Made by a program: the position numbers and the translations under genes. The notes under the pieces are model-generated. The model saw nothing but the letters and a program-made list of their open reading frames with translations, was not told the DNA's origin and made no database searches. Shown in pieces: positions 15,556-20,898 of a DNA stretch of 47,163 nucleotides; the stretch's first letter is position 1, and the number at the start of each line of letters is the position of its first letter. This stretch comes from Salisapilia sapeloensis CBS 127946 (Eukaryota; Protista; Oomycota). Location of the stretch: assembly GCA_023334545.1 (NCBI GenBank), contig JAADVB010000149.1:1-47163 (forward strand), in the 5' to 3' direction.

Positions 15556-15779
15556 GATAGTTTACTTGGAACGGGGGTACACTCTTCTATCTAATAAAAG
15601 AACGAAATGAGTTACGCCGACTATCGTTGCGTACGAGGGAAGGAACGTACGGAGAGATCAACCGGCGGCTCAACTCGTTTTCGTTTGTGGGTTTTTTACA
15701 GGAAGATTGAGGTTTTATTCTACCAAAGGTGTACCATGGATGTACCGCGGAAGTTGATCTCGATGCCCACAAGACGAGA

Positions 15780-16270
15780 ATGGCGGAAGAGTATCGGCAG
15801 CGACTGGATAACAATGCTGAAAAGTTGGTGGAGAACTTCAAAGGGTTGCTAAAGACAGCCAAGATAAAGGACCGAACGAATACGTCGAGAGAGACGTATC
15901 AGAACTCCATTTATGCTACGTCACTGGTACACGAAATGGATCAAGTCGATTGATAGGATAGTAACAGGGTGCTAGGTCCAAGCAAGTGAGAGTCTATTGA
16001 AGCTAGTGTCGGAAATGAAGCTTTCGTTGGCGCTGGGAGACTTTGAAGGGATGAATCAGAACGTGGATGCTACCATCGAAGACCTATATCGACGGTAAGC
16101 AGCTCGTGTCTTGACTAATGAAACGCTTCTGACCTGGCACTAGATGCGATGACATTGATACGCACATCACACACTTGGGCGCAGACATTTCGTCTGCGTT
16201 ATTCGAGCTAGAGAACCACTACTACCAGTCTAAATGGCGTCTTGATCCGGAGGAACAAGCTCAACGTTAA
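15780..16270 (+). CDS. MED22: Mediator subunit 22, 3 exons (5' end uncertain)
   Basis: Exons 15780-15926, 15976-16094, 16144-16270 with 49-nt introns. Product YRQRLDNNAEKLVENFKGLLKTAKI...SIYATSLVQASESLLKLVSEMKLSLALGDF matches the MED22/Srb6 pattern (RL..DNF..IIK.AK; A.ESL.KLVS.LK..L.L.DF). Confidence 0.85.
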
Positions 16271-16285
16271 CATTTTCCATTCGTC

Positions 16286-18205
16286 TTACTCTTTCTTCTG
16301 TCCATTCGCTTGGACGTTCCCAATGGCACTCTTGGGTAAATTCTCTCTCCGTCGCCATTCTTCCAACCGCCTCGCATTCTCCTCTTCCGTCATTGGCAAG
16401 TACCTACATATATCATTAACATATATTTCGTCTAGTAGAAAGCAAGGGTAGCATACTTTGCTTTTTCCTTTTCCGATAGATTCTTCCACATCTCTCCAAG
16501 TACTTTAGATGCGTCTTTCGCACTTTGACTGGGATGTGTGATCGGCAATTGCTTACGCTGTTCTCGACAGAACATGAGGAACGAGTTCACTGGCTTTGGA
16601 GGTTTCGTCCGAGCGGATGCCAAGGACATGACATTCGACGACGAGACGGAAGTCGATGGACGTGGCTGAGTTTGAGACTGAATCCGTCGAAGATCTGTCT
16701 TCTCTAATAGCTGAACGTCGTCTGCTAGTAGGAATTTCACACGTGGAGAGAAGGAAGCAGTTTCGCCTCGATCTCGAAAGACCATTTCCACTTGTGGTAA
16801 TCGAGTCACTTTATCCTGTTTTCCTTCTCGAAGCAACTAGATAAAGAGTGAGTATTTGTAGGTAGATGAGTGTCTGTACAAGGTACTTTGGCATAGATAT
16901 GTAGTTGTTCTCGGATGGAAAAAGCGACTTGAGCTTCGAATTCGCCACTTAGACCCTATACATGGCGTTAGCTGTCAATCTTTCTAATGTAAGAATCGTT
17001 GTACGTACGCATTCAGCACAGACGATACGAGCAAAGTCATCTGGACTGTTGCTTTCGTTGTTTAGATCCCACTAGAAGACACATGAGACTTGTGTTAGAA
17101 CTAAATCAAGAGGAAACGTACTTCGAAGCGATCGATAAAGATGGTGTCGTGGATACGAATGTTGATGAGAATCGGATGGAGACTCTCCTTGTTATGCGTC
17201 GATTTGGTAAGTGGTACGGTGGGTCGAATTGCTTCTACTTGACGTCGAATAGACTGAACGATCGGTTGAAAGATTGGTTCAGGGAGATTCGAATCACGCA
17301 TTAACGTCGCAGCGAAACTTTCGTACGTGAAATCGCTTTCATAACTAGAGCGAGGTGAGTTGATGATGGAGGAAGTAGACATAAAGTAGCAAGTACATAT
17401 TCCAGCAGAAAGAATCGACGTAACGAGTGCCTTCTACATCCACATCCAGACGAATGGGAACGAGTATCGTGTCAGGTGCAGGTGTCTATCTCCATGTGAG
17501 ATTCTATAATAGATAGAAGATGGGGATGGACGTACCTTTGGGTAATGATATGCTTGTCGCTGTCGTAAATGACGATTACTTTCTCTATTGCGCTGTCGAT
17601 AAAAGTGTAGAATTGCTTTTGTAAAGGAATATACCTGGCTGCTTCCTGCATGCTATCATTCATTTCATCCAGCTTCCGCTTGAGTTTTGGTGACACGTGC
17701 GCGGACTGCATCACTGTATCATGGATGAATAGTATGTTCTACGACACGAGTATATCATTTTACTTAGAAGGTTCTTGTCCATTGGTTTGCCACCTCGACG
17801 TCGAATCAACCACGTTTCCATGAGTCCATTGATCTAACATCATGTGAGACGAAGACGAGGTAGAGTATCTCGTCCTACATACTCGAGCGACGTTGCCTTT
17901 ATACCGACCAAGCATCCATTGAGAAAGCATACTGGCATTCACACCGCATTCCTTGGACACATCGACTTGTCGTAACCCGATTTTACCACGTAACGACTCG
18001 ACCTAGTAGCATTGCATGAATACTAGAGCTTTGTGAATACAAAGTAGACAAGTACTTCTTGTGCTAGAACAGCACGTTCCATCTCGGCATTTTCCTGTGA
18101 CTAAGTAGGGATCAGTCGGAGTTTTCTGCTGGACTCTAGATAAACATAAACTACCGACGGCACCGCCGGCACCTCCGTCTTGGCAGCATTCGTACTCGTA
18201 CTCAT
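16286..18205 (-). CDS. SNF5: SNF5/SMARCB1-family SWI/SNF subunit fused to an N-terminal HTH and a C-terminal HMG box; 12 exons, ~450 aa
   Basis: Manual splicing over 11 GT-AG introns gives one frame: MSTSTNAAK...LRQVDVSKECGVNASMLSQWMLGRYKGNVARINGLMETWL...ILVPIRLDVDVEGTRYVDSFCWNIYESDFTYESFAATLMRDSNLP..IVQSIRRQV...ILINIRIHDTIFIDRFEWDLNNESNSPDDFARIVCAECGLSGEFEAQVAFSIREQL...KPPKPVNSFLMFCREQRKQL...DASKVLGEMWKNLSEKEKAKY. Both SNF5 repeats and the HMG signature are clear. Confidence 0.88.
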
Positions 18206-18603
18206 GTCGACTTGCCCGTAATTGGTTTCTGAAGTGGCTGAAGTAGTCCATTTTCATTGGACAATAGTAGCGTCACATTAGTACACGAGTATCTCTCCTG
18301 TCTCTTCGCCTCGTCAAGTATCACCCACCCATCTACTTGATCAAGTACTAAGTACACTTGTACGTATACATATACAAATATGAAGAGGATAGAAAGGAAG
18401 ATAGTAGAATGAAGTAGCGAGTGTCTATTGTCTGACCTGCGACGTGTAGAATGGTTGTCTCAGTAAAAACACCCCACTTATCGTGTTTTTTGAAGGCGAG
18501 AAAGCGGCAAAGTCGACTCGGACGGTGTTCGTTTTACACTGGACACTCGCCGTTCTGCATCTTTACGCGTGACTTGTACGTCCGATAGCCTGTCAAACGT
18601 ACG

Positions 18604-18618
18604 TCATTCACACTTTTC
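18604..18618 (+). promoter_or_regulatory. Candidate oomycete Initiator + flanking element (INR/FPR-like) upstream of PP4R3
   Basis: TCATTCACACTTTTC, 100 nt before the PP4R3 ATG, is a near match to the oomycete TCATTYBNNNWTTY core promoter (one mismatch). Confidence 0.35.
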
Positions 18619-18718
18619 TATCGCCTCGCTTTCGTCTTTATAAGCTTGAACGGATTTGCATTTCCCGACCAATCGCTCCAGCCGTCGTCGAACGAGATTG
18701 ACAGTCGTGTCGAGTAAA

Positions 18719-20898
18719 ATGGACTCGAATGAGGTCGTGTCGATGCCCAATAGTGACCCAGAAGACTGTGATAGCCCAGAGTACGTATAGATAGCGTACG
18801 ATACGAATGGCTATGTGAATGACGCATCTTGGTGATCATGATAGACCGGAGCTGCCGCCGTGCCAAGTCGAGCGACTGCCAGATATTCTACTAACGATCC
18901 AATCGACTCGAACAGACCATCGATGTCGACTTGCTGAAAAGCTCTACAGTGATGTATGCCTATGGATGCTGTGTGAATAATTTCTATCTCCTATTGACTC
19001 TACCTTGGTACTAGAATGGTTCGTACATTGAAAAGCTACTCAATCTCTTTGACGTGTGTGAATTGGAGAATGACAAATACATTATGGATCAGTTCTTTCA
19101 CATCTTCTTCGCACTCGGTACGTCTCTCCATCTACGTATCCAACTACCTAGATACTAATTCATCGGACTAGTCGAGTTGGGCAGCAAAGACATTCTGCTC
19201 GTACTTGTGAATGACACCAACTTCTTCTCGGTCCTCGGTGTCTTTGGTCACAATCCGAGTCTCTTACACGAAATGGATTTTCGATCGACGTTGGAGCAAA
19301 CGGACGGATATAAGGAGCTCATTCCGATCCGAGAGAACCAGATACGACATCTCGTGCATGCCAACTTTCGTCTTCACGTACTCAAAGACAATGTCCTGGC
19401 ACGTACGTTACCAGAGAACGCTGCCATGTTGATCGACCACATCTTGAATGAACACAACCATCGTATCTTGACGTACATTTCAGAATCCGAAGAGTACTTG
19501 GACGAGCTCAAGCGTCTTTTAGCAGATGAAAATCAGAGAAAGGAAGCGTTAGGTCTTGTGAAAGAACTTGTGCAGCTCGTTCGGTCGACGAAATCTAATG
19601 ATTCCATGTTCCGATCGAATAACTTGAATGGCGTCCAAGTACCATATCGTGCACTTCATGAAGACTTTTTCGTCGATCAGAAGCTATTTGATGCCTTAGC
19701 CAATGCACTTGCAAGTGACCAAGAACAAGAACGTTCGACTGCGTTGGATATTCTATCGACGCTTCTCTATTCGCACGGTCCAGACAGACTACGAGCACAC
19801 GTCGTGCAGCATGAAAAGACCGAGATTCCGATGCCTCAGGACGATGAGTACTTGGTCTCGAAGAAAGATCAGTCGCTCTTACGAGGGCTCGTCTCTAGTC
19901 TCATGCAAGCAGAGGATAGAGGACAGGTAGTGTCGATTCTAAAGGAGTTATTTCGAGTACCTCTCGGTCAAGACGACCAGTTCCTCGGTCTCTTGTATCC
20001 AAACTACATGGCGTGGTTGTTACAACCACTCAAGAGTCGTCCGAGTGTCTCGACAAAGGACTTGTTTTCCCTCCAAGCAAGTATTCTAGACCTCTTTGCC
20101 TTCTGTACAGAGCATCATGGGTATCGTATCAAGTATCTCTTAGGTCGACAACCTATTGGGACGTACATGACACCATTCCTCGAGTCAAAGAACAAGTTCT
20201 TAGCGATGGAAGCTATCAAGTGGGTACGCGTCTGTGTTCTCCGTCGCGAGAATTTCTTTTCCAAGTTTTTGATCCAACAAAATCTACTCGCTCCACTTGT
20301 ACATCGACTTGCAGTCCATGGACAGAAAGATACAGCCATGACATCGGCCGTATTAGATGTCCTCGCGACGATCGAACGAGAGAATTTAGTCTCACTCGTC
20401 GAGTATTTGTTCAAGCACTTTTACGACACGTATCAATCGACTTGTCCGCTTGTGTTTGAAGCGATTCGAGTCCGGTATCAAGATAGGAATGGACAGGAAG
20501 ATGGCGAGAGCACGCCTGTGATGCACGGCATGGATGCAGAGGAAGAGCGGTACTTTGATAAAGACACCAAGGAAGATACGCCCAAGTTGGTCGACTACGA
20601 GGAGGATGATGAGGATGGAAAGGAGCTGGAACTACCAGTACGACCGAAAGAAGAGGAAGAGGAAGACGTCTTTCATGGAGGTTTACCTCCCGCTCGAGAA
20701 ACTCCTGTGGCGAATGGCAAGAAAGCATCTCCGAAACGCATGCAGAATATGTTTGCTCACGTCTCGTGGACGTTGCAGCCGAGTAGTGAGGAGCAGAAGG
20801 AGAAGGGAGAGAAGAGGAAGTTAGAGTTAGGCGACGATGAACAGGGTGCTAGTCCAGTCAAACGAGGCAAACCCTGTACACGTGTGCGTTCCAGCTAA
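18719..20898 (+). CDS. PPP4R3: Protein phosphatase 4 regulatory subunit 3 (SMEK/Psy2/SMK-1), 4 exons
   Basis: Exons 18719-18780, 18845-18953, 19015-19117, 19172-20898. Motifs PELPPCQVERLPDIL, YIEKLLNLFDVCE, QIRHLVHANFRLHVLKDNVLAR, LFAFCTEHHGYRIKYLL, SAVLDVL, DxEEERYFD, LVDYEEDDED. Confidence 0.86.

Follow-up and report, generated by a model that had tools for sequence, protein, structure and literature searches.

The subject of this analysis is a gene on the minus strand, from position 18205 to 16286, of a 47,163-nucleotide (nt) stretch of DNA of the oomycete Salisapilia sapeloensis CBS 127946 (hereafter the window: contig JAADVB010000149.1, positions 1 to 47,163). Comparison of sequences confirms that this 12-exon gene is real and that it is an oomycete version of SNF5/SMARCB1, with a helix-turn-helix (HTH) domain in front of the two SNF5 repeats and an HMG box behind them. 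The conserved subunit SMARCB1/SNF5 keeps SWI/SNF remodelers attached to the nucleosome, and lineages differ in how they supply the DNA-contact modules. We consider it likely that the window gene is the orthologue of this core subunit of a SWI/SNF-type remodeler, built as the three-module chain that is typical of its lineage.

The splice model rebuilt from the raw sequence gives one frame of 451 codons followed by a TAA stop (coding sequence of 1356 nt, its sole stop being the terminal one), interrupted by 11 introns of 49-54 nt each that all run from GT to AG and keep the frame at every junction. The list of open reading frames (ORFs) by itself presents the gene as fragments. An original prediction, made from the letters of the sequence, had proposed that 12 exons scattered in that list splice into a single frame containing an HTH, both SNF5 repeats and a complete HMG box, and the rebuilt model bears this out: its HTH exons (18002-17883 and 17833-17764) coincide exactly with those proposed, Pfam places SNF5 on exons 7-10 and HMG_box, above cut-off, on exon 11, and the HTH is recovered as consistent sub-threshold HTH_3/HTH_31 matches together with an AlphaFold model of the orthologous domain. 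Searches used either single window exons or, as a proxy, the contiguous transcript contig of the orthologue in Phytophthora infestans (L004). The parts of the gene are:

18155..18205, minus strand: exon 1, start codon and 17-codon non-conserved leader (MSTST...); frame and GT donor, with no similarity to orthologue N-termini.
18056..18100, minus strand: exon 2, conserved lead-in (...NAEMERAVLAQE) and first part of the long HTH helix 1 (helix 13-32 in the orthologue-domain model); 60% identity to P. infestans, where exon 2 has the same 3' boundary.
17883..18002, minus strand: exon 3, HTH helices 1-3 including the recognition helix and the invariant ...LSQWMLGRYKGN... stretch; Pfam, orthologue identity (85-90% to Albugo and Aphanomyces by tblastn) and exon size (120 nt, as in P. 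infestans); the HTH of this exon is single-copy in the genome.
17764..17833, minus strand: exon 4, HTH helix 4 (...INGLMETWL; helix 62-77 of the model) and basic RRRGGKP tail; 83% identity to P. infestans, 70 nt in both.
17536..17713, minus strand: exons 5 (17713-17635) and 6 (17584-17536), poorly conserved linker between HTH and SNF5; 79 and 49 nt, as in P. infestans, with an orthologue linker identity of ~42%.
17122..17485, minus strand: exons 7 (17485-17397) and 8 (17344-17122), SNF5 repeat 1 and start of repeat 2; Pfam SNF5 profile.
16887..17071, minus strand: exons 9 (17071-17009) and 10 (16955-16887), SNF5 repeat 2; Pfam SNF5 profile, 65-79% identity to orthologues.
16603..16836, minus strand: exon 11, first part, SNF5 C-terminal tail with conserved helix motif (...ADDVQLLEKTDLRR..., ~16678-16725), then a Ser/Thr/Pro-rich linker of ~25 residues.
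16457..16602, minus strand: exon 11, second part, HMG box helices 1-2; Pfam HMG_box.
16286..16403, minus strand: exon 12, HMG box helix 3, short tail and TAA stop (16288-16286); 61% identity to HMG helix 3 of Albugo laibachii.

Exon 1 is the least certain of these exons and the start codon the least certain point of the gene model, because exon 1 is the only part without conservation support. The fusion of SNF5 to the HMG box is independent of any splice call, since exon 11 (16836-16457), which lies within an uninterrupted ORF (16432..16836), contains both the SNF5 tail and the beginning of the HMG box. When three oomycete orthologues were compared with the window by tblastn, the same exons were matched in order with E-values down to 3e-54, and the match is therefore far beyond chance.

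That the three modules form one chain is also seen in P. infestans, for whose orthologue (P0159) there are two contigs, one genomic (L003) and one from a Logan run assembly (L004). The latter carries an unbroken ORF of 499 codons with all three modules, and it aligns to the genomic contig in blocks separated by GT-AG gaps of 61-117 nt; L004 is therefore a spliced transcript. Transcripts ending between the SNF5 repeats and the HMG box, named in the original prediction as a sign of two genes, are not what this related species presents. The coding exons of P. infestans measure 33, 39, 120, 70, 79, 49, 89, 283, 69, 368 and 301 nt, and those of the window 51, 45, 120, 70, 79, 49, 89, 223+63, 69, 380 and 118 nt, so that 10 of the 11 window introns occupy P. 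infestans positions and one is extra, dividing the 283-nt exon into pieces of 223 and 63 nt. Both organisms also share the gene order PP4R3 (divergent), SNF5-HMG and Med22 (convergent), with PP4R3 at 19177-20898 and Med22 at 15729-16098 of the window, both on the plus strand. Exon sizes and synteny show the window gene to be the orthologue of the P. infestans gene.

In the SNF5 core, Pfam SNF5 (PF04855) matches exon 7 over profile positions 6-29 (E 5.8e-6, 26.6 bits against a cut-off of 21.8), exon 8 over positions 34-74 (E 6e-4), and exons 9 and 10 over positions 134-153 and 155-177, in collinear order from exon 7 to exon 10; a six-frame profile search of the genome scores SNF5 at the window locus with 44.6 bits. 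The full-length P. infestans orthologue matches the same family with an E-value of 8e-41, and its SNF5 core aligns with human SMARCB1 (E 6.5e-31), Sfh1 (1e-20) and Snf5 (7.5e-19). The alignment with human SMARCB1 extends to residue ~371 of 385 and so enters the C-terminal helix, whose ...EREDFKRMR motif is invariant among the orthologues.

The HMG box is recognised by Pfam (HMG_box, PF00505) in exon 11 alone, with an E-value of 1.1e-12 and 48.6 bits (cut-off 25.4) over profile positions 1-48 of 69, and in the genome profile search the window locus reaches 57.5 bits. In the orthologue the match covers positions 1-64, across the junction of exons 11 and 12, and the domain belongs to the HMG_box family by this profile. 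Compared with solved sequences, the orthologue box is closest to HMGB1 box B and Abf2, members of the non-specific class, followed by SMARCE1 (E 4.4e-7); SOX2 (about 1e-6) and SRY match as well, within 1e-6 to 1e-4. The box contains ...KPVN(S/T)F..., in which the Asn stands at the same aligned position as in SRY. An Asn at that position is typical of the sequence-specific class. All aligned orthologue models that reach past the HMG box end in a D/E-rich tail, with 18 D+E and 2 K+R in P. infestans; the Lagenidium model stops inside the box. The window protein ends 38 codons into exon 12 and the reading frame of the convergent Med22 ends 15 nt past that stop, and it therefore has no acidic tail. 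The acidic tail of the other oomycete orthologues recalls that of HMGB1, and in the window there is no space for one before the convergent Med22.

The HTH is the most conserved part of the protein. Among ten full-length orthologues the mean pairwise identity is 92% for the HTH and 77% for the HMG box, against 64-67% for the SNF5 repeats and 40-48% for the linkers, and the add-on domains are thus more tightly constrained than the core that defines the family. In an alignment of 13 orthologues from ten genera, residues G33-N61 (Albugo numbering) are invariant over 29 consecutive positions, and exon 3 of the window has the same residues. The contiguous reference for this domain was taken from the P. 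infestans transcript (L004:78-347, 90 amino acids), which is 88% identical to window exon 3 and 83% to exon 4. Pfam matches exon 3 with HTH_3 (PF01381; E 6.6e-4, 20.1 bits, cut-off 23) and HTH_31 (PF13560; E 5e-3, 17.5 bits, cut-off 27), and the whole P. infestans domain with HTH_3 (E 1.7e-4, 22.0 bits) and HTH_31 (E 7.8e-5, 23.3 bits), with the same cut-offs. Against the sequences of solved structures the orthologue HTH reaches E-values of only 0.1-0.3, the matches being Xre antitoxins and the P22 c2 and 434 repressors over helices 1-3; in the alignment with the P22 c2 repressor, the recognition helices show ...ISQWE opposite ...LSQWM. With 12 K+R to 5 D+E the domain has a net basic charge, and it is followed by RRRGGKP.

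Modelled by AlphaFold with a 16-row alignment, the orthologue HTH has a predicted local distance difference test score (pLDDT) of 80 overall and ~93 for residues 20-75, and is predicted to form four helices (13-32, 36-43, 47-54 and 62-77) arranged in a lambda-repressor-like fold. This model replaced one made from the single sequence, which was poor (pLDDT 60.7) and gave weak fold searches, with Mu B first but at an E-value of 0.59 and Z 5.1. With the alignment-based model Foldseek returned at least 500 matches, in which the top ranks are all lambda-repressor-like at probabilities of 0.97-1.00, although the E-values, for a domain of this small size, are only 0.07-0.25; geometrically the best match is the N-terminal domain of Mu B (2mqk; template modelling (TM) score 0.81 by target length, root-mean-square deviation (rmsd) 1.6 A). 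In the VIA search, which is independent of Foldseek, 2mqk takes first place (Z 9.9, rmsd 1.9 A, 63 of 65 residues), followed by the POU-specific domains of OCT4, Brn-5 and Oct-1 (Z 8.9-7.1), then by HNF-6 CUT, lambda cI, SATB1 CUT and HNF-1A, and finally by generic XRE proteins at Z 5-7. Sequence and model together support the assignment of the N-terminal domain as a predicted lambda-repressor-like HTH.

The three-module layout is standard across the oomycetes in the databases searched, and it is already catalogued by automatic annotation. In a HMMER search with exon 11 no protein was more than 50% identical, and matches in a single stretch span the whole exon. These relatives, from Albugo candida, Aphanomyces astaci, Phytophthora kernoviae, Globisporangium, Thraustotheca and others, contain SNF5 and HMG_box by Pfam and, where the N-terminus was modelled, the same sub-threshold HTH_3/HTH_31 matches. 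A word-indexed search with the Albugo protein gave 50 entries, nearly all with precomputed SNF5 and HMG_box, and all 45 that bear an organism name are from oomycetes: Albugo, Phytophthora (many species), Globisporangium, Bremia, Plasmopara, Peronospora, Peronosclerospora, Lagenidium, Saprolegnia, Achlya, Thraustotheca and Aphanomyces. Among their public names are "HMG box domain-containing protein", "Lambda repressor-like, DNA-binding domain", "HTH cro/C1-type domain-containing protein" and "Chromatin structure-remodeling complex protein BSH". With about 45 oomycete database entries already catalogued automatically, the architecture is less novel than the original prediction had hoped. In the literature we found no paper describing an oomycete SNF5, and a broad subunit survey does not mention the oomycete architecture (PMC9170682); as far as the literature could be searched, the window gene is a new and fairly divergent member of a lineage-specific, unstudied oomycete architecture. 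A word-indexed search restricted to the HTH recovered oomycete SNF5 proteins only, by a method that needs shared 5-mers and similar length and so does not exclude other stramenopiles; under the same limit, a search with the SNF5 core recovered oomycetes and four SNF5 or SNF5+GATA proteins, one of them named Sporothrix.

Compared with its relatives in Albugo candida (CCI47041.1), Aphanomyces astaci (XP_009841118.1), P. infestans ('HMG (high mobility group) box') and P. cactorum ('Lambda repressor-like, DNA-binding domain'), the window protein has the same order of HTH, SNF5 repeats and HMG box and identical HTH helices 2-3, and its intron positions and flanking genes match those of P. infestans; it differs in being only ~35-50% identical outside the HTH and in lacking their acidic, D/E-rich C-terminal tail. 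With animal SMARCB1 (BAF47, INI1) the oomycete protein has in common the two SNF5 repeats, the C-terminal helix region as far as the alignment of the P. infestans orthologue reaches, and a domain of DNA-binding type N-terminal to the repeats. In the animal protein, however, that domain is a winged helix (Pfam INI1_DNA-bd), whereas its oomycete counterpart is lambda-repressor-like; Pfam finds no INI1_DNA-bd in the full-length P. infestans orthologue at E <= 1, and in the Atlas this domain is seen only in the chordate SNF5 cluster. Conversely, the invariant HTH of ~60 residues has no counterpart detected in the animal SMARCB1 or plant SNF5 clusters inspected.

Animal SMARCB1 also has no HMG box of its own, unlike the oomycete protein. 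SMARCE1/BAF57 likewise brings an HMG box into a SWI/SNF-type complex, but as a separate polypeptide with an NHRLI/coiled-coil region, while the oomycete box resembles HMGB1 box B and Abf2 more closely in sequence than it does SMARCE1 and is covalently fused to SNF5. SMARCE/BAF57 was not found outside opisthokonts in a survey whose main text makes no mention of oomycetes or stramenopiles (PMC9170682). A Pfam scan of the orthologue gave no match to the SMARCE1/BAF57-Ssr4 family, and a genome search with Ssr4_N (PF08549) gave none either, but neither did its controls give the expected matches. Some fungal proteins of the Sfh1/Snf5 type (P0198 and P0201, one of them named Sporothrix 'sfh1') carry a GATA zinc finger on the C-terminal side of the SNF5 core, in the place taken by the HMG box in oomycetes, and have no HTH at the N-terminus. 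Toxoplasma SWI/SNF (SWI3) co-purifies with an HMG-domain protein that is a polypeptide of its own (PMC13377188). Taking BAF57, the Toxoplasma HMG protein and the fungal GATA finger together, DNA-binding modules have thus repeatedly been appended or recruited to this part of the remodeler; the version fixed in oomycetes is covalent and comprises two of them.

As to the closest folds, the resemblance to the Mu B N-terminus noted in the original prediction stands at the level of fold (Z 9.9, TM 0.81), both domains (PDB 2mqk for Mu B) being four-helix and lambda-repressor-like with long first and last helices. Membership in the Mu B family was rejected: identity is 16-17%, there is no significant sequence match, and the AAA+ ATPase module to which Mu B joins this domain is missing from the oomycete gene. 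The POU-specific (OCT4, Oct-1, Brn-5), CUT and HNF1 domains are likewise four-helix, lambda-like DNA readers, belong to eukaryotic chromatin proteins and have the same ...WL ending; a POU-specific assignment was rejected too, with no Pou or homeodomain Pfam match at E <= 1 and no adjacent homeodomain, so that the likeness is at fold level only. Neighbours of the HTH in the Atlas are small bacterial and phage hypothetical proteins (0.90-0.91), which we take as leads only. A scan of viral contigs for a phage donor gave four ordinary XRE repressors with 43-46% identity over ~37 residues, seeded by a shared 8-mer, and a scan of prokaryote genomes gave no bacterial donor; with no close donor in either set, these sequence scans offer no evidence for a recent transfer of the HTH from phage or bacteria.

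By analogy with solved animal and yeast complexes, we infer DNA binding and complex membership for the oomycete SNF5-HMG protein, which may also have the sequence-reading and DNA-bending capacity suggested in the original prediction. Through its SNF5 repeats it would dock into the remodeler's base module. A passage of PMC11975040 describes SMARCB1 as anchoring its complex at the acidic patch of the nucleosome, and the conserved basic C-terminal helix of the oomycete protein would similarly rest on the H2A-H2B acidic patch. The HMG box, tethered ~25 residues behind that helix, could then bind and bend nearby nucleosomal or linker DNA, a job that would fall to the separate subunit BAF57 in animals and to the separate co-purifying HMG-domain protein in Toxoplasma. 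At the other end, the net-basic HTH would replace the winged-helix domain of animals and may contact DNA via its canonical recognition helix. In the oomycetes a whole eukaryotic class has HTH and HMG modules fused to the core subunit and more conserved than that core, which amounts to an experiment of nature as to the DNA contacts that a remodeler requires. The invariant domain of ~60 residues also provides a concrete, testable point of entry into the chromatin regulation of these organisms, among them major pathogens of crops and fish. The value of these observations is comparative and hypothesis-generating, and we claim no new principle.

A second SNF5 gene is present in the genome (22.4 Mb in 1365 contigs), on contig C589 (158532-161900, L001; minus strand, about 2285-1094 of L001), and is more divergent. 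It has both SNF5 repeats and, directly downstream, an HMG box that is 36% identical to that of P. infestans and has the same ...P(V/I)N.F... start; thus the HMG fusion probably predates this duplication. An HTH in the paralogue was rejected: three tblastn queries reach its N-terminal ORF only at E 8-10, Pfam finds nothing there, the hhalign probability is 0.1%, and the HTH exon of the window gene has no second copy in the genome. These matches suggest that the genome encodes two SNF5-HMG subunits, perhaps for two remodeler subtypes like those of yeast Snf5 and Sfh1. The genome profile search also found HMG-box genes on contigs C597, C1144, C114 and C744, so that free HMG proteins exist in this organism. 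Other HTH_3-like matches number only three: a strong one (49 bits) at C560:3790-3945, in an open frame of 146 amino acids that may be MBF1, and two weaker ones at C113:6544-6645 and C512:49747-49872, in open frames of 642 and 336 amino acids.

Several observations weigh against the reading of the window gene as a remodeler subunit with two DNA-contacting modules. The transcript that supports a single chain comes from P. infestans, the window gene being predicted from genomic sequence, and one might suppose that the splice model has falsely joined two or three neighbouring genes, such as a small one for the HTH and others for SNF5 and the HMG box, the more so as conservation is poor in exon 1 and in the linker exons 5-6 and some database models of orthologues are truncated or have lost a domain (e.g. 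SNF5-only entries). Against this supposition, the SNF5 tail and HMG box occupy a single uninterrupted exon, all 11 junctions are in frame with GT-AG introns of 49-54 nt, the exon sizes match those of P. infestans, where the spliced transcript contig spans the whole ORF, and full-length models of the three-module gene exist in more than 10 genera; separate genes are hence a very improbable account, already close to refuted. The window protein itself departs from its relatives at the C-terminus. Its helix motif reads ...EKTDLRRIQ (LRRIQ where the orthologues have KRMR), its SNF5 tail of 59 residues has no significant relative when searched alone against solved structures, and the regulation of its HMG box may differ, given the missing acidic tail. 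The loss of that tail and of one arginine of the motif, together with the existence of the paralogue on C589, could be taken to mean that the window locus is a decaying or non-functional copy and that the C589 gene provides the working subunit. We give this next to no credence: the window frame runs intact through all 12 exons without an internal stop, its HTH helices 2-3 do not differ from those of the other oomycetes in the alignment, the syntenic orthologue is the window copy and not that on C589, and it is the C589 paralogue that is the more divergent of the two.

The HTH leaves more room for doubt. Its Pfam scores, though consistent, are all below the curated cut-offs, and in VIA a Z below ~13 can reflect a common arrangement of helical bundles; therefore the assignment of the fold rests on the agreement of sequence and structure, not on Z alone. 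In cryo-EM of MuB filaments, moreover, the N-terminal domain of Mu B, the closest structural match, could not be placed on DNA and its role is called unresolved (PMC11292022), so that the fold is no proof of DNA binding. The domain could instead be a protein-protein or regulatory module that docks a remodeler subunit, a transcription factor or a histone surface, leaving only the HMG box to touch DNA. The behaviour of Mu B and the sub-threshold profile scores favour such a role, and near-total invariance over ~40 residues, including positions expected at the surface, fits a constraint on several faces. We nevertheless hold it to be unlikely: helix 2, turn and helix 3 align to the operator-binding P22 c2 repressor and agree with it in the motif of the recognition helix, the domain has a net basic charge and continues into the RRRGGKP tail, the next-best structural matches are the DNA-binding POU-specific domains, and the HTH occupies the position of the winged-helix domain of animal SMARCB1. 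Beyond the preferred reading of the HTH as a DNA contact, one could speculate that the invariant HTH is a sequence-specific reader and that, with the HMG box, it puts into a core remodeler subunit the pair of folds, POU-specific-like and HMG, which in animals reach BAF in trans on pioneer factors such as OCT4 and SOX2. No separate targeting factor would then be needed to direct oomycete SWI/SNF to a fixed DNA motif. This stronger claim is a long shot in our judgment, and its rider, that the HTH was captured from a Mu B-type gene of a phage or transposon in the oomycete ancestor, is weaker still.

Finally, some features of the neighbourhood deserve mention. Despite an identity of only ~35-50% for the SNF5 gene outside its HTH, the order of the genes (window 15729-20898 compared with L003) is kept. 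At 16241-16289 of the window, the last sense codon and the stop of the SNF5-HMG gene overlap a good donor-like GTAAGA, and an AG follows 49 nt downstream, at the local intron size; splicing there would replace the stop by five further codons (...RHLDW) within the 3' region of Med22, an arrangement that may be due to chance. The convergent SNF5-HMG and Med22 reading frames end 15 nt apart in the window, against 87 nt in P. infestans. In the latter, positions 1665-2069 of L004 join the SNF5-HMG mRNA and the convergent Med22 mRNA in one contig, which implies that the 3' ends of both P. infestans transcripts overlap.

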